In this document: one piece after another, positions 36,589 through 43,900 of the stretch
Numbering within the stretch: the first letter of the stretch is position 1
Layout of the letters: each line of letters opens with the position of its first letter
NCBI GenBank assembly: GCA_001179505.1
Contig: CDMY01000227.1
Location: 62,001-126,000 of the forward strand
From: Vitrella brassicaformis CCMP3155
Lineage: Eukaryota > Protista > Chromerida
Direction of reading: 5' to 3'
Length of the DNA stretch: 64,000 nucleotides
Notes under the pieces: model-generated
What the model saw: the letters and a program-made list of their open reading frames with translations, nothing else
The model's database searches: none
Told to the model about the DNA's origin: nothing
Translations under genes and position numbers: made by a program

Positions 36589-39500
36589 CTAGTCTCCTCC
36601 TCCCGCCTCAGACTGTCCTCCCTTGACGATGTAGGTGACCGATATCTTGATGCACTCCCTGCAGGCAGTGCAGACCACACAGGGAGGGAGACAGAGACAC
36701 GCAGAGCACACGCATCGGCATCGCATCGCGCGTCTCTCATGCATCGATCGCATCGCAGCCATCCACCTACCTGAGCTCGTCATCGGTCGTGTCGTAGACC
36801 ATCAGGAAGTAGGAACGCTCAGACGGATCCGCAATCTGCATATGAGTGAGACACGCCAAGACACACACGCAAACAAAAAGACATACATGCGAATTAAGAA
36901 GCATATCGCCCCTCCCTCCCCTCGCTGTCTGACTGACCGGCGCGAACTTGAGTGGGAATTTGCCTTTCGAGTTGGCGGTGACCGTCACCTCCTTCTGCCT
37001 GTACGGACGCAGAAAGGCGTCCAGACAAAACACCCACATTGATGTCATGTCTCGGCTCATTGCTGCAGAGCTGCGCTGCGGCGTACCGTACCTGCATTGC
37101 ATGAGGTCGGGGTCAGAGCTCTTCAGGCGGAAGCTGACGTCATTCGACTCCTTGTTCTCATACGTGATCTTCTGCACACATAAGAGTGAGGCACTCACAC
37201 ACACGTACACACACATATCCTCTGTGCCCGTCTACTCCATGCACACCGACCTGGTTCTTGGCCACCCCGCATGCGAGAACGAGCTCGTACTCCCTCGTGG
37301 GCTCCGGTATGGCCTTGTCCTTCTCCTCTTTGGGCGGTGGCTCCTCCTCCTGCACTGGGGGGGCGGGCGGCTCCACCTCCTCGACCGCAGGGGGGGCAGG
37401 AGGCCCCGGGGGCTCCTCTGACACATAAATGAACACATCCACACATGAATGCGGCTGACCTGACAGAGAGACATGTACCCTTTTGCGCAGCTTCGACGTC
37501 ACTCGGCATCTCCTCGGCAATGGGGGGCGTCGCTGAGGTAACGAACGTACACACAGAGAGAAATGGATAGACGGAGACAGAACAATATTGCGTGCACGGC
37601 ACTGCGTGGAGTGAGTGGATGTGTAAGGAGGCGCTGCGCTCACCGGCCCCGGTGACGACGTCGAGCTTGGTGGCGGTCTCCTTTTTGGCACAAGGAAGCG
37701 GCCCGCCGAACGAAAACTGTTTGTCGCCACCAGCCGCACCCTCACCTATCGCCACCGGCACTCCTCCCTGCCCACCACCACGAGACGTCACACTCCCCTC
37801 AACTGACACACAATACATTACAGAACAAAACAGGACAGACAGACTCGTGTGTGTCTGACTTTAGTCGTTGTCTGTCTGTCTGGTGGCTGGCTGACTTCCG
37901 GGCGGGGGAGTGGGTGCCCCGCTCTCGTCCGCCTGCATGGATGCGGAAGGAGTCGAGGCTGCGTGGAAGGTGGCGGTGGCTGCCGTCTGGGCGTGGTAGG
38001 TGCTGGCGCTGCTGGGCCGCGTGGGGGTGGCGGTGGTGACCCCCGTGGCCGCCTGCCTGTCCTTGTCCTTGGCCATGGGCATCGTTGCCCGCATCGTCTC
38101 CATGTCGTGCAGCACCTCCGCTACCGAACACTCCTGGATGGCATTGCATTGCACAGACAGGTGCACTTGGGCTGGGGGGGGTGAGGGAAAGGAAGGGGAC
38201 TGTGTACCTGCAGCATGGCGAGGAGGTCTGCGAGTGTGGCGAGTCCGTCTCTGTCGGCGTCGACCAGCTCAAACAGCTCATTGAAGTCAAAAGACTCGTC
38301 AAACACAGGCCACGGATAGAGCTCTGCATTCACACGCACACACATATGTGGGTGTCAACACACCTCATGCCGACTGACGTGCTTTGCCGACCTTCTTTGA
38401 ATTCCTGAAGTGTGAGCCGTTCGGTGAGGCCCCGCCTGAGGTAGTCCCGCAGGAACTCAAGCAACGGCTGGTCGCCACGCGCACGCAACAAACGCGCCTG
38501 CAACTCCACTGCAGCCATCTTGCGATCTATGCGACACACCCGCAACACACATTTGCACCCCAACTTCTCTTCTCCCTCTGCTTGAGAGTGTGTGTGTCTG
38601 ACCTTCCCGGCCCACAGGAGGCGACAGCACCGGTGGTCCGCCCTCACTGGGGGCCACGGGGCTGGCGGGGTGGCTGGGCATGGGTGTGGGGAAGACGCTC
38701 ACGTCGGTCATGAACGACGCCCCCAGCCGCTGGGAGCCGCGCGTGCTGCCGGGCTGCAGGTACACCGTCGACCCCAGCGACTTGCGGGAGTCCAACAGAG
38801 GGTCTTGACCGGTGGCAGATCCTGTGCAGTGCAGTGCAAAGGGACATATTGTTCGTGTGGTGGGGTGGGGTGTGTGGCGTGGTCTGTTGTCCCTTTCTCT
38901 TGCTTGCCTGGCCTTTCCATCGGTGTGTCGATGCCTCCCACGTCGGCGATTGGCAGGCTGTCCAGAACACTCTGGCGGGGAGGCCTGGATGCAGGCACAG
39001 ACGGAGACACAACACGGGTATTGAAAGGAACGCATCTTATGCTGTGTCATCTTGCTCACTCCTGGAATGTGATTTTGCGCTTCAGCTGAGGGAGGGCAGT
39101 CTCGCTCGGGGTGACCTATGCACCACGCCACACATCAAACGGCCAGGACTTTCCCCCCACGCCGTCCGCTTGTGTATATCTCACTGCGATGGTGACGCGC
39201 CGCTGGTCGGCAGCGTAGTGCCTCATGAAGTCCCTGAGGAAGCAAGAAAGAGAGAAAGAAAGAAAGAAAGACGCATCCACACACAACACAGTGAGCGGGC
39301 GCATCGACCAGTCTGTCACATGTGGGATGGAGTGTGTCCTTACTGGTACTTGACGCCTCCCGCGGGGTCCTCAAACGCCTCACAGAGGGCCCGCAGCTGA
39401 CCGGTTGGGAGGGATATGTTCCCCGACGCCAGAGCCTGAACGGGGGGAGACACGAGAGATAGAGAAGGATACCATCTAAGCTTTCTTTCAATTACCTGTT

Positions 39501-40788
39501 GGAACTCAGCCCTCGAGACGGCGTGTGTGTTCCATCGGTCGAGGGCCTGGAAGGTCGACGTCAACACATCAGCCTTTTCACTCGCCAAAGCACGCAACTC
39601 CTGCAGGAGCACACACCCGATGTCACAACGAGCACACTGACTCTCTTCCCTTCCCAATTCTGGGCACCTCCTCCGTGATTGGCTGCGGCTCCTGCGCCGC
39701 CATGGCCGACAGCATACTCATCTGCCGCCTCGTGTCCCACAGATCCTCCTTACCCGCCACCACCACCTGCTGCTCCGTCGCCATGCTCGCCCGGCTCGGG
39801 GCCGCCGCAGACTTCGGCCTCGTCGATGCGACGGTTGTCACAGAGGGTGCGCGAGACGAAGGGGCAGCCTGCGAGGGGGCTTGCCTGACCGAAGGGGCCC
39901 TCTGTGGCTGAGGGGGTGCGTATGAAGGTGCGTGGGACGGTGCGCGGCTTGCGCGAGGGGAGGGGGTCTTCTGCTGTTGCTGCTGTCCCTTCACGGGGGG
40001 CTGTGGTGGCGGGACTGACTCGCCCTGAAGCACTTTTTGGACTTTCTGGGCGACCAGCCAGGCATTGGGCCACCGACCCACCGTCAACTTGGAGAACACC
40101 AGCTGCCAGACAAGAGGGCAAAAACGGAGCCGAGAGACGCGTGTGTGTCCGCTGACTGACTCTGAGTTACCTACCTGTCTTTTGGAGTGTCGAATGACGG
40201 AGACCTCGAAGGCTCCCAGTTGAGGGTACCTGAACCTTCGGACGGCGCCACCTGACCCCTTTACGACATCTGACAGAACAAACATGTCCTATCGGATGGA
40301 TGTCCCCTCTGCTCTCTTGTTTGTGGACGCGTGCATACAGGTGCGATGGTGGTGATGGTCCATGAGCCACACCTCGTCCCCGTGCCGACCTAGCCTCGGG
40401 GGAGGATTCACCTGCAGACAGACAGACAGACAGACAAACAGGCAGACCACAGGGATGGGACGAAACGAGCCCGGATGTCAGGTGCGAGTGAAGGATGTCT
40501 CACGTTGACCACGACGTCATCGCATGTTGTCTCTATCTCACTCTTGACTGAAACACGCAAGGAGAAGAACAGAGTAGGGGCTTCCATATGTTGTCTGCAT
40601 CTCTCTCCCCCCGCTCACCCCTGGATGCGTAGTCCTCGTATTTGGCCGCCACATGGCGAGTGCACCACGCGTGCTCCTCGCAGTCAACGCTGCAACCAAC
40701 ACAAAGGCACAATGACAAGGAACAGTGACATGAAGTCTCAGGGATCTTTTCCTTCCCACCAGTGCTCTATCTCGACAGAGTTCGACAT
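36589..40788 (-). CDS. Multi-exon protein with an N-terminal Rdx (SelT/SelW/SelH-like) CxxC domain, EF-hands, Pro-rich linkers and a C-terminal NPHP4-like Ig domain
   Basis: Spliced N-terminus MSNSVEIEHC|VDCEEHAWCTRHVAAKYEDYASR, then RYPQLGAFEVSV|LVFSKLTVGRWPN. EF-hand-like segments are FQALDRWNTHAVSRAEF and FELVDADRDGLATLADL. The C-terminus is YELVLACGVAKNQ|KITYENKESNDVSFRLKSSDPDLMQ..KFPLKFAP..YFLMVYDTTDDELR|ECIKISVTY. Confidence 0.75.
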
Positions 40789-40956
40789 CCTGGGATCGAG
40801 AAATGGGATGGGACGGCACTCTGAGCACGAGCTTTCAATTTCGGCTCGTGGGGGCTGCGTGGGGGCGATGACGGACTCAAGCCCGCACTGGCAGATTGGG
40901 CCAAATCCCCCACATGCAGGAGAAGGGAGCCCGAAACTTGACGCGCTGCGATTGAA

Positions 40957-43900
40957 ATGGCCTCGTTATCACCGTCGTTGCAGTCCTATGGGTATCAGTT
41001 GGGCAGCCGTGTGGGCGGCGGACAATTCGGGCAGGTCTACTTTGTCGCGAAGGCCTCTGACAAGGCTACCACACTCGTCGCCAAGGTCTGCCGACGGCAC
41101 GTGATTTCCTTCCTCTCTCATCCATGTGGTGTCGCGTCATGCAACGTCGTGCAGTTGATCCAGCCAGCTGATGACAAGACCAAAGAATCCGCACTACAGG
41201 AGGTATCTACCAGGGGGCAAAGAAAATCATGATGGAGCGTGTTTGACTGCATATTCGTTTATCTATTTACCCGCATCGCGTGCAGGCCCACCTACTCAAG
41301 ATGCTCAGCCATCCCCACATCGTGGCCTGTGTTGATGCCCTGCAGCTCGACACGGGCCACATCGCGATCGTTCTCGAGGTAAGGCAGCTGCTAACTACCT
41401 CCATGTCGTTGTGGCGATCTCCTGATTGGCACGTGCGTCAGTTCAGTACTGCGCCGGGGGCGACCTATCGGCAAAGGTCGAGACCTGCAAACAGAATCCC
41501 AATCAGGCCCGCTTTACGGAGGAGAGAATCATGTTGTGGTCAGTCCGGAGACAGAGAGGAAAGGCTCACTGGGATGGATCGACGCTGGTGTGTGTGCAGG
41601 TTTGTGCAGATGGCGGAGGGCATCCACTATCTGCACCAGCAGCGAATTTTGCACAGAGACATCAAGTCAAAAAATGTCTTCCTTGATGGGGCAGACAATC
41701 TGAAAATTGGTACGGACATGCGCCCGTGATTTTACTCTTGAGCAGTACGATTACGTGGTTTTTGTCTTGTGCAGGCGATTTGGGTCTGTCAAAGGTTTTC
41801 ACAGGGCAGCAGGAGGAGGCCAAGAGCTTTGTCGGCACCCCATTGTATCTCGCACCTGAGGTAGGGGAGAGAGACGGAGGCAGACAGGCACCTGCATGGA
41901 TGTATTCACCCGACCATCAGATATGCGAGAACAAGCCCTACACCTACAAGGCCGACATATGGGCGCTGGGCTGTATCGTCTATGAGCTGGTCGCGCTGCA
42001 GTCGGCCTTCCACGGCACCGGGTTGCTCCAGGTGGTGTGGAAGATCGTTACAAACCAGCCGCGGCCGCTGCCGCCCGATTGCCCAAGTGGCATCAGAGAC
42101 ATTATCATGTATGGGATGATGGAATAGCGAGGGAAGACGTGACGGTGTATGCGGCGTTGGCTTCTCAGGCGAACGCTGGAGAAGGACCCAGCGAAGCGCG
42201 TCAGCCTCGCTGCGTTGCTGCAAGGTACTTGGTTGGAAGGATCGGGATCTTTGTTTGTGCTCATTTGTGTCTGACTCCATTCAGATGAGTACGTCAAGGG
42301 CTACGTCCAAAAGAATGCATCAAGACACCAGCAGGCAGCGATCCCCTCCGGTCCCCCACGGCCAAGTGTCCCGACAAAAAGCACACGTACGCAGCGCACC
42401 ATCACCAACACTTTTCTCAATATTCGAGCCATCCATGTGTCTCCTTACCTCCCCATCCCACAGATCCACGTCACGCCCTGCAGCCGACGGTCTTCTCCTT
42501 CCCGTCCCCCTCAAAGCCGTCCCCCTCGCCCTCTCCCGTGCCGCCCACCGCCCCCGTTCCCCACAATCAGAAGACAGGCGGGTCACTCCGTGCTCAGGTG
42601 CGCAAATCTGTCAGACACACACATCAACACATGCACACAATCGAAAGGATACACAAAGACCTCGCCCCCTTCCCTCAGAGATACTCGGCGAGACCAAGGC
42701 TGTCAGTCGACAAGTCGCAGGCATCCTCAGGTGCGTCCACTGCCGCCCCGCCGAGGCTGGAGATATCGGCTGTCGGGAGGCGGTCGGGAGACACACTGGA
42801 GTACTCGGTGAGCACTGCGGGGGGCGGTGAGAGGAACAAGGACGTCGGAGGGGAATCTAGTCAAGACTTTGTGATGCTTTTTGCAAATCGGGGTAAGTCA
42901 GTCTGTGTGGGCATGTCTTCCTTCACCACCCCTGTGTCTGTGTCTCCTTCTCCATCTGCAGAGGCGAGTGAGCGTGCCATGGATAATTCGTCGGAGTTGC
43001 ATGTGCTGTCTGAAGCGTACGTGTACGGCGTCCTCCTGAAGATGCGCATAAAGCTCGAAAAGGCCGGCAGCACCGTCGAGAAGCTGTTCGCCAGATTCGA
43101 CACATCCAAGGACGGCATGCTGAACATGCAGGAATTCATTCAGGCCCTCTCTGCCTTTCCCCAGCTGGGCCTGTCCTCCTGGGAGGTCGTGGAGCTCTTC
43201 AAACACTTCGACTACGACAAGAACCAGCAAATATCTTTGGCCGAGTTCCGCAGCACACTGGAGAATGCCAACAAAAATGACGAATGGTCAGGTTTGAATT
43301 CGCCCATCAGATCTGGTTTCGGAACTGCCGTCCTCGTGGGCAGTCGTCATGTCCCGAAGGAGATGCTGACAAATGGGGACGAGGCTGATGTGATGCTGCC
43401 GCTGGGAATGGTGAAAGAGGCGGTGGAAAGGGCCGGCTACTCACTCAGAGAGGTCTTCGAAGAATATGACACATATGGACGAGGGGCGATTGCACAGGCA
43501 CGTGTATGGCGCGACTGCATGCCTAGGGTGCATTCTCTTCTTCTTGTTGTGTTCAGCACGACTTCCAGAGGTTGGTGGCCATGCTGGTCCCGAGCATGCG
43601 GCCGATCGACATCGACAGGCTGTTTGCCATGATGGACAAGGACAAGAGCGGAGACATCAACTTCAAGGAATTTTTAGCCAACTTCGAAGACCCCACCTCC
43701 CCATACCACAAGATGGTCCACTCCCCCTTCAGCCCAATGTCTCCGGACGCATCGCCTGGAGGCATGGGACAGCATCACGGTATCAGCAGCGAGTCGGGCA
43801 TGTCGTGGAGGAAGCGGGACCCGCTGCACCGGCTGCCTGGGCTGGTGATGAGTGAGAGGTACAGCAAGCACGTCCTGGCCCGGCTGCAGCGGCGGCTGGT

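Follow-up and report, generated by a model that had tools for sequence, protein, structure and literature searches.

Rdx proteins (SelW, SelT, SelH and MIEN1) are among the least understood proteins of the thioredoxin fold, and to our knowledge their physiological substrates are largely unknown. Those of the MIEN1 (C17orf37, 2LJK) and SelW types (PF10262, TIGR02174) are single-domain proteins of about 90-115 aa, with CxxC or CxxU after strand 1 and GAFE[IV]...LVFSKL..G.[FW]P further on. Nephrocystin-4 (NPHP4) is a ciliary transition-zone protein of ~1,400 aa; the third and fourth of its several Ig-like domains have Pfam models of their own, and PF26187 (Ig_NPHP4_4th) is modelled on the fourth. 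Both domain types occur together in database proteins that include OMJ81809.1 of Stentor coeruleus (UniRef100_A0A1R2BYJ0, named 'NPHP4 Ig-like domain-containing protein' in UniRef), for which matches to PF10262 and PF26187 are precomputed. As a point of contact with cilia, this Stentor homologue belongs to a ciliate. The Rdx-Ig architecture is already auto-annotated and is uncharacterised, and we found no paper on family members in the literature.

We examined a window of 64,000 nucleotides (the whole stretch of DNA analysed, on contig CDMY01000227.1) from the chromerid alga Vitrella brassicaformis. Reading the DNA by splice sites and phase, we obtained a minus-strand gene model of 22 exons that runs from an ATG at 40788-40786 to a TAG at 36591-36589 and encodes 745 aa. 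All of its introns are GT-AG and 60-188 nt long, and a script translation kept the frame unbroken through the 22 exons. We put the probability at roughly 0.7 that the locus is one nuclear gene for a soluble protein of ~745 aa, composed of an Rdx domain, an EF region and an Ig-like domain.

Like OMJ81809.1 and the database homologues P0004-P0011, the predicted protein has an N-terminal Rdx signature, a long low-complexity spacer and a C-terminus of the Ig_NPHP4_4th type (KKITYxN...SSxPxxM...KGKFxLxF...YLYV...ECIE), but it differs from them in its many introns and in a four-EF-hand-like module within the spacer, those relatives carrying no EF-hand Pfam domain. The MIEN1 and SelW types share both of their motifs with it, whereas they have no EF-hand or Ig partners and lack the H-x-W-C-T-x-H signature as well as an insertion of 30-40 aa between strands 2 and 3. 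The top matches to exons 5, 6 and 7 are relatives of a further type, represented by the open reading frame (ORF) L163 and the fragment P0003, with the same order of Rdx domain, 'TDDELRxL' and two EF-hand pairs. In L163 an Rdx domain of the same type is followed by four canonical EF-hands, whereas the Vitrella loops are mostly degenerate; conversely, L163 has C-S-D-S in place of CxxC and is missing the first His, both of which Vitrella keeps, and its ORF stops without the Ig domain that Vitrella has. No other sequence among those found unites Rdx, EF-hand and Ig domains, and the EF-hand insertion is a new variant of the architecture.

Single exons were too short for Pfam, and a degenerate DNA pattern was used on metagenomes instead. 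It recovered at least 120 loci of one family as uninterrupted ORFs, with a signature, C-x2-C-x2-H-x-W-C-T-x-H-x3-K-Y, that is also present in the Vitrella exons and whose residues are invariant in an alignment of five full-length ORFs (A4). Judged by its sequence, the gene belongs to a widespread protist family (Rdx, low-complexity spacer, Ig_NPHP4_4th) that takes in the Stentor protein and many metagenome ORFs. Own-genome searches with single pieces returned no paralogue; only a two-sequence profile (A2) found one, on contig C272, in which an acidic spacer links an Rdx-like domain bearing C-T-S-N to a doubled Ig domain. Rdx domains of the signature-bearing subtype are also fused to multi-domain phosphagen kinases, in a layout that presumably resembles flagellar creatine kinase; in this arginine-kinase-fused branch the third Cys of the signature is Asn.

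In an exhaustive phmmer search with exons 5 and 6, the 131-aa metagenome fragment P0003 was the only true relative, and two further matches, P0001 and P0002, proved to be repeat artefacts. Neither P0003 nor the C-terminal ORF gave any match in word-index searches, owing to the length window and the short exons. Strict peptide patterns gave no confirmed locus in the first metagenome scan, Pfam and NCBIfam were mostly blank on single exons and ORFs, and a PDB sequence search with exon pieces returned nothing useful. Against a profile built locally from 78 SelW-like proteins of bacteria, exon scores were collinear and insignificant. Also set aside were L004 and L012, as low-complexity or chance matches, and the loci C104, C366 and C565, which are ordinary Rdx genes unrelated to the Vitrella fusion gene.

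The C-terminal Ig-like region (36589-37295) starts in the 3′ portion of exon S (up to 37251) and continues through exons T (37092-37171), U (36938-36998), V (36771-36835) and W (36589-36658), the last carrying the stop codon. These five exons read ...YELVLACGVAKNQ|KITYENKESNDVSFRLKSSDPDLMQC|RQKEVTVTANSKGKFPLKFAP|IADPSERSYFLMVYDTTDDEL|RECIKISVTYIVKG... up to the TAG, and they fall in order along the C-domain profile of the family, S covering positions 7-29, T 32-56 with 29.0 bits, U 60-78 with 16.7 bits, V 81-92 and W 99-107. PF26187 is precomputed on eight database homologues (P0004-P0011), with which the Vitrella exons align at up to 56% identity (exon T against P0005, the highest for any C-terminal exon). 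An earlier note on this DNA had proposed an NPHP4-type terminal Ig domain, and these homologues bear it out. Contiguous homologues also gave weak ASH, PF22544, MSP and PapD-like matches; a protein-atlas lead (0.80-0.82) pointed to the ASH clan for the C-terminal region, with OCRL-like ASH among the neighbours, and AlphaFold on the intron-containing C-terminal ORF returned a pLDDT of 34.2. By way of its homologues, the C-terminus can be assigned to the ASH/MSP class of Ig-like domains, in the type that Pfam names Ig_NPHP4_4th. The likeness to NPHP4 itself is one of shared domain family only: a single such domain in 745 aa, the rest being Rdx domain, EF region and spacers with no other NPHP4 regions, rules out an NPHP4 orthologue.

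ASH-class domains are associated with cilia, the centrosome and the Golgi, and ASH/MSP domains occur also in the Golgi and ER proteins OCRL, TRAPP and VAP (PMC4094338). In the mechanism that we propose, the Ig-like domain would anchor the protein to a structure of the cilium, the basal body or the centrosome. The occurrences in OCRL, TRAPP and VAP and the OCRL-like atlas neighbour lend some weight to a protein unrelated to cilia, whose Ig-like domain would be a generic ASH/MSP-class module working at the Golgi, at ER contact sites or in the cytoplasm; consistent with this, no axonemal chain in the 2026 PDB copy (assumed to include axoneme cryo-EM chains) matched the family profile. Yet the Pfam model matched by the homologues is specifically the NPHP4 one, the named family member comes from a ciliate, and the kinase fusions of the same Rdx subtype have what we take to be a flagellar creatine kinase-like layout. 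We consider a non-ciliary protein unlikely, while giving it the most credence among the alternatives.

At the N-terminus, the CxxC motif is split by an intron, as the earlier note had claimed. Exon 1 (40760-40788) supplies the ATG, MSNSVEIEH and the TG of Cys10, ending in ...GAG CAC TG|gtggga, and exon 2 (40619-40689) begins after ttgcag with C GTT GAC TGC. The Cys10 codon is thereby divided as TG|C across intron 1 (40761-40760 plus 40689), Cys13 is TGC (40682-40680), and the N-terminus reads MSNSVEIEH-C-V-D-C-EEHAWCTRHVAAKYEDY. Neither codon is TGA, in agreement with the further claim of Cys rather than Sec. Since the CxxC is split in this way, the Rdx domain is hidden from ORF- and exon-level searches. 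Exon 1 would form β-strand 1; its VEIEH matches the VEIEY of the canonical consensus (VEIEYCxxC), and it lies collinearly at positions 2-7 of the family N-domain profile, on its own not significantly. Exon 2, which after the third base of Cys10 continues as VDCEEHAWCTRHVAAKYEDYASR, completes the CxxC and carries H-x-W-C-T-x-H-x3-K-Y; it scores 28.5 bits against the profile (E 1.7e-9, positions 11-29) and matches 14/14 family proteins with up to 68% identity.

The rest of the domain is predicted to spread over four more exons. Exons 3 (40504-40547, VKSEIETTCDDVVVN) and 4 (40373-40411, VNPPPRLGRHGDE), placed by GT-AG sites and phases, would together supply strand 2 and the last part of helix 1; exon 3 resembles the consensus AVKSEILAEAPEVKVLKNEVP by eye and, though weakly scored, falls in line at profile positions 34-46. 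Exon 5 (40175-40288, ...RRFRYPQLGAFEVSVIRHSKRQ) contains YPQLGAFEVSV, the putative strand 3 (11.4 bits, positions 71-86). The next intron (intron 5, 40174-40103) is missing from P0003, which confirms it, and at the equivalent position the paralogue also has an intron. Exon 6 (39668-40102) holds the putative strand 4 and helix 2 (LVFSKLTVGRWPNAWLVAQKVQKVLQGE), followed by a P/S/A/Q-rich low-complexity spacer to ...PITEE; it scores 24.6 bits (E 2.8e-8, positions 90-115) and is 61% identical to P0003. The YPQLGAFEV..LVFSKL..RWP stretch that the first reading reported is thus recovered as YPQLGAFEVSV in exon 5 and LVFSKLTVGRWPNAW in exon 6. Other phase-0 donors are present in exon 6; we preferred the one at 39668 for the parallel between ITEE|ELRAL and TDD-ELRQL of L163.

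Exons 5 and 6 matched the G-x-FE[VI]...[FW]SK...G-x-[FW]P half of the Pfam Rdx model (E=0.026, profile positions 40-73). At 15.2 bits the Vitrella pieces fall below the 22.6-bit gathering cut-off of PF10262, since six exons share the domain and were searched piece by piece; P0003 is likewise sub-threshold, at matching profile positions (PF10262, E=0.0023; TIGR02174, E=1.2e-4). Contiguous homologues with the same signature pass the gathering score at positions 1-74, covering the full profile with 42.2 (L111), 34.5 (L149), 32.9 (L171), 31.6 (L138), 29.8 (L167), 28.1 (L143) and 26.1 bits (L119), which upholds the Rdx call of the first reading. Its description of H.WCTRH as typical of SelT/SelW/SelH did not survive: the bacterial consensus is CTGCRWLLRAAWMAQELL, and the motif marks an Rdx subfamily of its own. 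The solved structure closest to the family profile is human MIEN1 (2LJK, E=4e-6), with no other PDB chain at E<=1. Protein-atlas neighbours of P0003 are Rdx clusters, and an AlphaFold model of that fragment (pLDDT 43.7) has a strand-strand-helix order that fits a thioredoxin-like fold. The collinear agreement with profiles from independent homologues (28.5, 11.4 and 24.6 bits for the N-terminal exons; 29.0 and 16.7 bits for the C-terminal ones) is far beyond chance, and we read the N-terminus as an Rdx (thioredoxin-like) domain that is MIEN1/SelW-like but divergent and has only Cys in its CxxC.

At this proposed docking site, the Rdx domain may switch a partner locally by thiol-disulfide (or metal-dependent) chemistry. 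The family-invariant residues of A4 are all present in Vitrella (C10, C13, H16, C19, T20, H22, K26 and Y27), yet the CxxC is not universal in the family, being C-T-S-N in the paralogue and C-S-D-S in L163, so dithiol chemistry cannot be the whole story. A doubtful alternative is that C-x2-C-x2-H-x5-H, often joined by a third Cys, binds Zn or Fe in a structural or regulatory role rather than forming a dithiol-disulfide redox center, on an Rdx fold serving as a binding module. Both Cys and both His are invariant across the five ORFs and are seen again in the arginine-kinase-fused branch, histidines of this kind are missing from canonical Rdx proteins, and the branches without CxxC (paralogue and L163) are also without them. 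However, the CxxC sits exactly at the strand 1/helix 1 place of the Rdx redox motif, side chains spaced i, i+3, i+9 on a helix would probably not share one face, and no metal-binding family was matched, R-spondin matches being not significant.

Downstream of the Rdx domain, exons 7-9 (39496-39600, 39344-39435 and 39185-39233) hold a first EF-hand-like pair with the degenerate loops DRWNTHAVSRAE and EDPAGGVKYQD, and exons X4 (38392-38518) and EF (38208-38323) a second. The X4 loop, LRRGLTERLTLQE, has likewise lost its ligand residues. Exon EF contains a canonical 12-residue loop of the EF-hand family (PF00036, PF13405 and PF13499), DADRDGLATLAD (38226-38261), with ligands at positions 1, 3, 5 and 12, Gly at 6 and Asp at 12; against Pfam EF-hand_6/EF-hand_1 it reached E=0.0013 and 18.7 bits, under the cut-off of 25, when exon and ORF pieces were scanned. 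Exons 7-9 and the three degenerate loops had no Pfam match in exon- and ORF-level scans. Exon 7 can be aligned from end to end with the first of the canonical L163 EF-hands (E 1.6e-5 for the match to L163), while X4 and EF gave no significant BLAST match to L163, the parallel layout of the second pair being seen by eye only. The EF-hands of the earlier note therefore stand as one canonical loop and a homologue of the first L163 EF-hand, three of the four loops being degenerate, and the Vitrella sequence does not appear to offer functional paired Ca2+-binding loops. Its spacer is best read as holding a four-EF-hand module like that of the L163/P0003-type sister branch, in which only the fourth loop is still canonical. 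Such a module would contribute at most one Ca2+/Mg2+ site and serve mainly as a scaffold.

Two further stretches of the model were placed by splice sites and phases. The linker exons X1, X2 and X3 (39060-39085, 38942-38984 and 38703-38753), with strong splice sites and a phase chain of 0>2>0>0, are its least certain part, and BLAST against family proteins found no homology for them. Between the EF region and the Ig-like domain (37296-38133), exons P (37896-38133), Q (37644-37802) and R (37479-37532), together with the 5′ portion of S, form a T/A/S/P-rich and E/P-rich spacer, assigned by GT-AG sites and phases. In its acidic/proline part this spacer is similar to those in L133 and the paralogue; within it, splice signals are what predict the P>Q junction. 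This junction bears on whether the locus instead makes a short, L163-type Rdx and EF-hand protein, ending at an in-frame TAA (37863-37861) downstream of the P donor if the P>Q intron is retained, plus either a separate downstream transcript for the Ig domain or a long form made by alternative splicing. That reading is improbable: L163-type relatives do end ~90 aa past the fourth EF-hand in a similar S/T/A/P-rich tail, to which exon P can be aligned (E=0.008), they have no Ig domain, and an ATG-initiated ORF starts at 37818, but P and Q join cleanly by splice sites and phases, the stop at 37861 lies only 43 nt from that next possible ATG, leaving no room for a 3′ UTR, a promoter and a 5′ UTR, no stand-alone Ig protein without Rdx occurs among the homologues, and the paralogue has both domains. 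Rdx and Ig domains co-occur in every full-length homologue and in the second Vitrella gene, and with the phase-consistent exon chain this paralogue suggests a single transcript from Rdx to Ig.

Together, these comparisons bring out a large, previously undiscussed protist branch of Rdx proteins with its own invariant Cys/His signature, always tethered to an NPHP4-type Ig domain, to EF-hands or to tandem arginine kinases. These fixed partner modules give testable hints on where and on what the Rdx domain acts. The subtype CxxC-x2-H-x-W-[CN]-T-x-H-x3-KY might even be a portable redox or metal-sensing module of cilia and flagella, mounted by protists on different flagellar effectors (NPHP4-type Ig domains, EF-hand sensors and multi-domain arginine kinases); we consider this unlikely. 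If true, it would reveal an unrecognised layer of redox control over ciliary gating, signalling and energy supply, and the Vitrella protein, the only case found that combines redox, Ca2+-sensor-like and Ig modules, would be the one instance in which redox, Ca2+ and docking modules are united.

The Vitrella brassicaformis assembly (72.7 Mb in 1064 contigs, ~58% G+C) is characterized by short GT-AG introns, and none of its contigs appeared to be human. Read from the DNA with each boundary checked by script, the window gene comprises 22 exons on the minus strand, running from an ATG at 40788 to a TAG at 36591-36589, with a 2235-nt coding sequence whose 745 codons include the stop; its introns are all GT-AG, span 60-188 nt and have compatible phases throughout. 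With CAC TG|gt at the end of exon 1 and C GTT GAC TGC at the start of exon 2, the N-terminus of the protein reads MSNSVEIEH-C-V-D-C-EEHAWCTRHVAAKYEDY. This junction bears out the claim of an earlier note that the CxxC is interrupted by an intron, and each CxxC cysteine has a Cys codon, as opposed to Sec, as that note had also stated. The other motifs it had listed (YPQLGAFEV, LVFSKL..RWP, an EF loop and KITYEN..FRLKSSDPDL..KFAP..VTY) were all found, in consecutive exons. Since several introns are in frame and stop-free, they produce misleading long ORFs at 40288-39626 and 37231-36770. Short tetranucleotide runs are also present in the introns, with (GTCT)n 5' of exon 4 (intron 40412-40503) and CCAT/CATC runs. 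A divergent neighbor gene lies ~170 bp from the start of the window gene (interval 40789-40957), which suggests a shared bidirectional promoter.

Every search on the Vitrella gene started from an individual exon, a stop-free stretch or a natural homolog, and the spliced protein was translated by script for a frame check. Because the domains are split over exons of 9-38 residues, profile searches were weak: Pfam Rdx matched exons 5+6 with E=0.026 (profile positions 40-73), Pfam EF-hand matched one exon with E=0.0013, and exon-by-exon Pfam searches of the C-terminal exons gave no match. In an exhaustive phmmer search, P0003 was the one true relative; this fragment of 131 aa comes from a 753-bp metagenome contig. 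P0003 lacks exactly the 24 residues assigned to intron 5 of the window gene, matches PF10262 (E=0.0023) and TIGR02174 (E=1.2e-4), and has Rdx clusters as its protein-atlas neighbors. The C-terminal ORF of the window gene fell near ASH-clan Ig families, including Ig_NPHP4_4th, in the protein atlas (lead-level scores of 0.80-0.83). Word-index searches, a first metagenome pattern scan and PDB searches with fragments or pieces yielded nothing usable, nor did AlphaFold on two fragments.

To define the family, metagenome contigs were scanned with the degenerate pattern FE[VI]–(6-12 codons)–FSKL-x2-G-x-WP, which returned at least 120 loci with identical spacing in nearly all and long uninterrupted ORFs at many. 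The motif C-x2-C-x2-H-x-[WY]-[CN]-T-x-H-x3-K-Y was found in 19 of the 28 ORFs with enough upstream sequence, and the 'H.WCTRH' previously noticed in the Vitrella gene is exactly part of it. PF10262 exceeded its gathering score of 22.6 bits, with the whole profile covered, in 7 of 10 ORFs scanned (L111, 42.2 bits; L149, 34.5; L171, 32.9; L138, 31.6; L167, 29.8; L143, 28.1; L119, 26.1). C-terminal domains of these ORFs gave weak but consistent Pfam matches to ASH, HYDIN/CFA65-Ig, MSP, DUF1573 and PapD-like domains. A profile of five full-length family ORFs then retrieved eight database proteins, all of which carry precomputed PF10262 and PF26187 (Ig_NPHP4_4th) annotations. Among them are Stentor coeruleus OMJ81809.1, with the UniRef name 'NPHP4 Ig-like domain-containing protein', and another with the JGI name 'selT/selW/selH-like putative selenoprotein'. 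The eukaryotic contig carrying the database relative P0005 is gene-dense, and neither of the two Pfam matches listed there, PF10262 and PF26187, is marked as weak. Human MIEN1 (2LJK) was the sole solved chain matched by the family profile (E=4e-6).

We built local profiles of the family N and C domains from natural homologs and searched the Vitrella exons one by one. Against the N domain, exons 2 (positions 11-29; 28.5 bits) and 6 (90-115; 24.6 bits) scored highest, followed by exon 5 (71-86; 11.4 bits), a weak match to exon 3 (34-46) and a non-significant one to exon 1 (2-7). Against the C domain, exons T (32-56; 29.0 bits) and U (60-78; 16.7 bits) were flanked by weak matches to S (7-29), V (81-92) and W (99-107). 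Exon order was perfect against both profiles, validating the exon model, and a scan of every stop-free stretch in the region gave the same picture. In single-exon BLASTP against family members, identity reached 68% (exon 2) and 56% (exon T). Together with the domain annotations of the homologs, this collinearity upholds the proposed Rdx and NPHP4-like Ig domains. The identity of the domains and their order along the window gene are shown.

Searching the Vitrella genome with a two-sequence profile identified contig C272, which bears a paralog (L102) on the plus strand (~108596-113105; L102:1597-6106) with an Rdx-like N domain, a long acidic spacer and two Ig domains. One piece reads MSDPVEVSIEYCTSNGFSTTYKVEKYPQ..., and in ..RRGSFEVSVKSGNVSR | EMFSKLKSGTWPNVSKLAKEIAK an intron between strands 3 and 4 is placed as in the window gene, whose exons match the paralog pieces in collinear order. 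The first of the tandem Ig_NPHP4_4th-type domains (KTYDLKLAVGQGKNQRLTYTNTTGEDQ ... CEKTFYLYVEDENLAILDCIAVSVTYIE) is followed by a second similar set, and a scan of stop-free stretches confirmed two full C-domain copies. Unlike the window gene, the paralog has C-T-S-N at the site of the CxxC. It also has a MIEN1-like 'GFSTTY'.

The EF-hand region was compared with L163, a locus on metagenome contig Ga0115104_11296482 (972-2528, minus strand) that encodes an Rdx-like domain of the window-gene type, with C-S-D-S, and four canonical EF-hands (Pfam EF-hand_7, 93 bits; EF-hand_1, four stretches) without an Ig domain; the fragment P0003 is of the same type. L163 appears to be a full-length transcript that includes a 3' UTR. 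Vitrella exons 2, 5, 6 and 7 match L163 in collinear order, with exon 7 covering its first EF-hand (E 1.6e-5), and by eye the later exons parallel its layout of two EF pairs. Loops 1-3 of the Vitrella protein have lost ligand residues, and the sole canonical loop is DADRDGLATLAD, with Asp at position 12. The earlier designation 'EF-hands' is thus correct as homology, while from the loop residues Ca2+ binding would be expected at one site at most.

We consider an obligatory Rdx-EF-Ig fusion in a putative single gene probable (roughly 0.8). The exon chain is continuous, an Rdx and an Ig_NPHP4_4th-type domain occur together in every full-length homolog and in the paralog, both EF pairs go with the Rdx domain in L163, and the sole alternative boundary is 43 nt, from the stop at 37861 to the next ATG at 37818. 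Homology support was not found for exons X1-X3. A short Rdx+EF-hand isoform is possible, since exon P is similar to the tail of L163-type proteins, which end with no Ig domain; retention of the intron after exon P would lead to an in-frame TAA (37861-37863) 34 nt downstream.

Rdx domains also occur with other partners. L119, on metagenome contig Ga0208544_10010690 (1-5195, minus strand), joins the Rdx subtype of the window gene, at the N-terminus (VVESCQNCKxHxWNTRHDEAKY ... GGYWPN), to several tandem arginine/creatine-kinase-like domains (PF02807, E=4e-20; repeated motif 'NVDSGIGVYAGSHDS'), a layout reminiscent of flagellar multi-domain phosphagen kinases. This 'GGYWPN' type accounts for 47 of 80 loci examined (L119 and 46 others, L104-L183). 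Within Vitrella, a canonical SelT-like Rdx gene (L014; C366:349185-349748, minus strand) reads ...ITIQYCQS, an in-frame TGA and QYKG, a C-Q-S-U selenocysteine motif, so Sec is present in an ordinary Rdx protein of this alga whereas the window gene has Cys. Two further ordinary Rdx genes lie on the minus strand at C104:163717-164130 and C565:46500-46682, one of a bacterial SelW-like type (RRYCVGCRWMLRAAWMAQELL) and the other with GATGNFEITVDGQLV.

ASH-class domains are associated with ciliary and centrosomal structures (PMC4094338). The Ig_NPHP4_4th domain, a member of this class, may tether the protein to such a structure, where the Rdx domain would act via its CxxC. Alternatively, the four invariant residues (C, C, H, H) could make up a metal site instead of a redox CxxC. 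The motif is lost in the paralog and in L163, suggesting that some family members work without it. The architecture joining Rdx to an NPHP4-type Ig domain is already in public annotation, and a literature search found no paper on it. The family-wide signature and the alternative partner domains appear not to have been described before, and the EF-hand module is what the Vitrella protein adds to the Rdx and Ig architecture.
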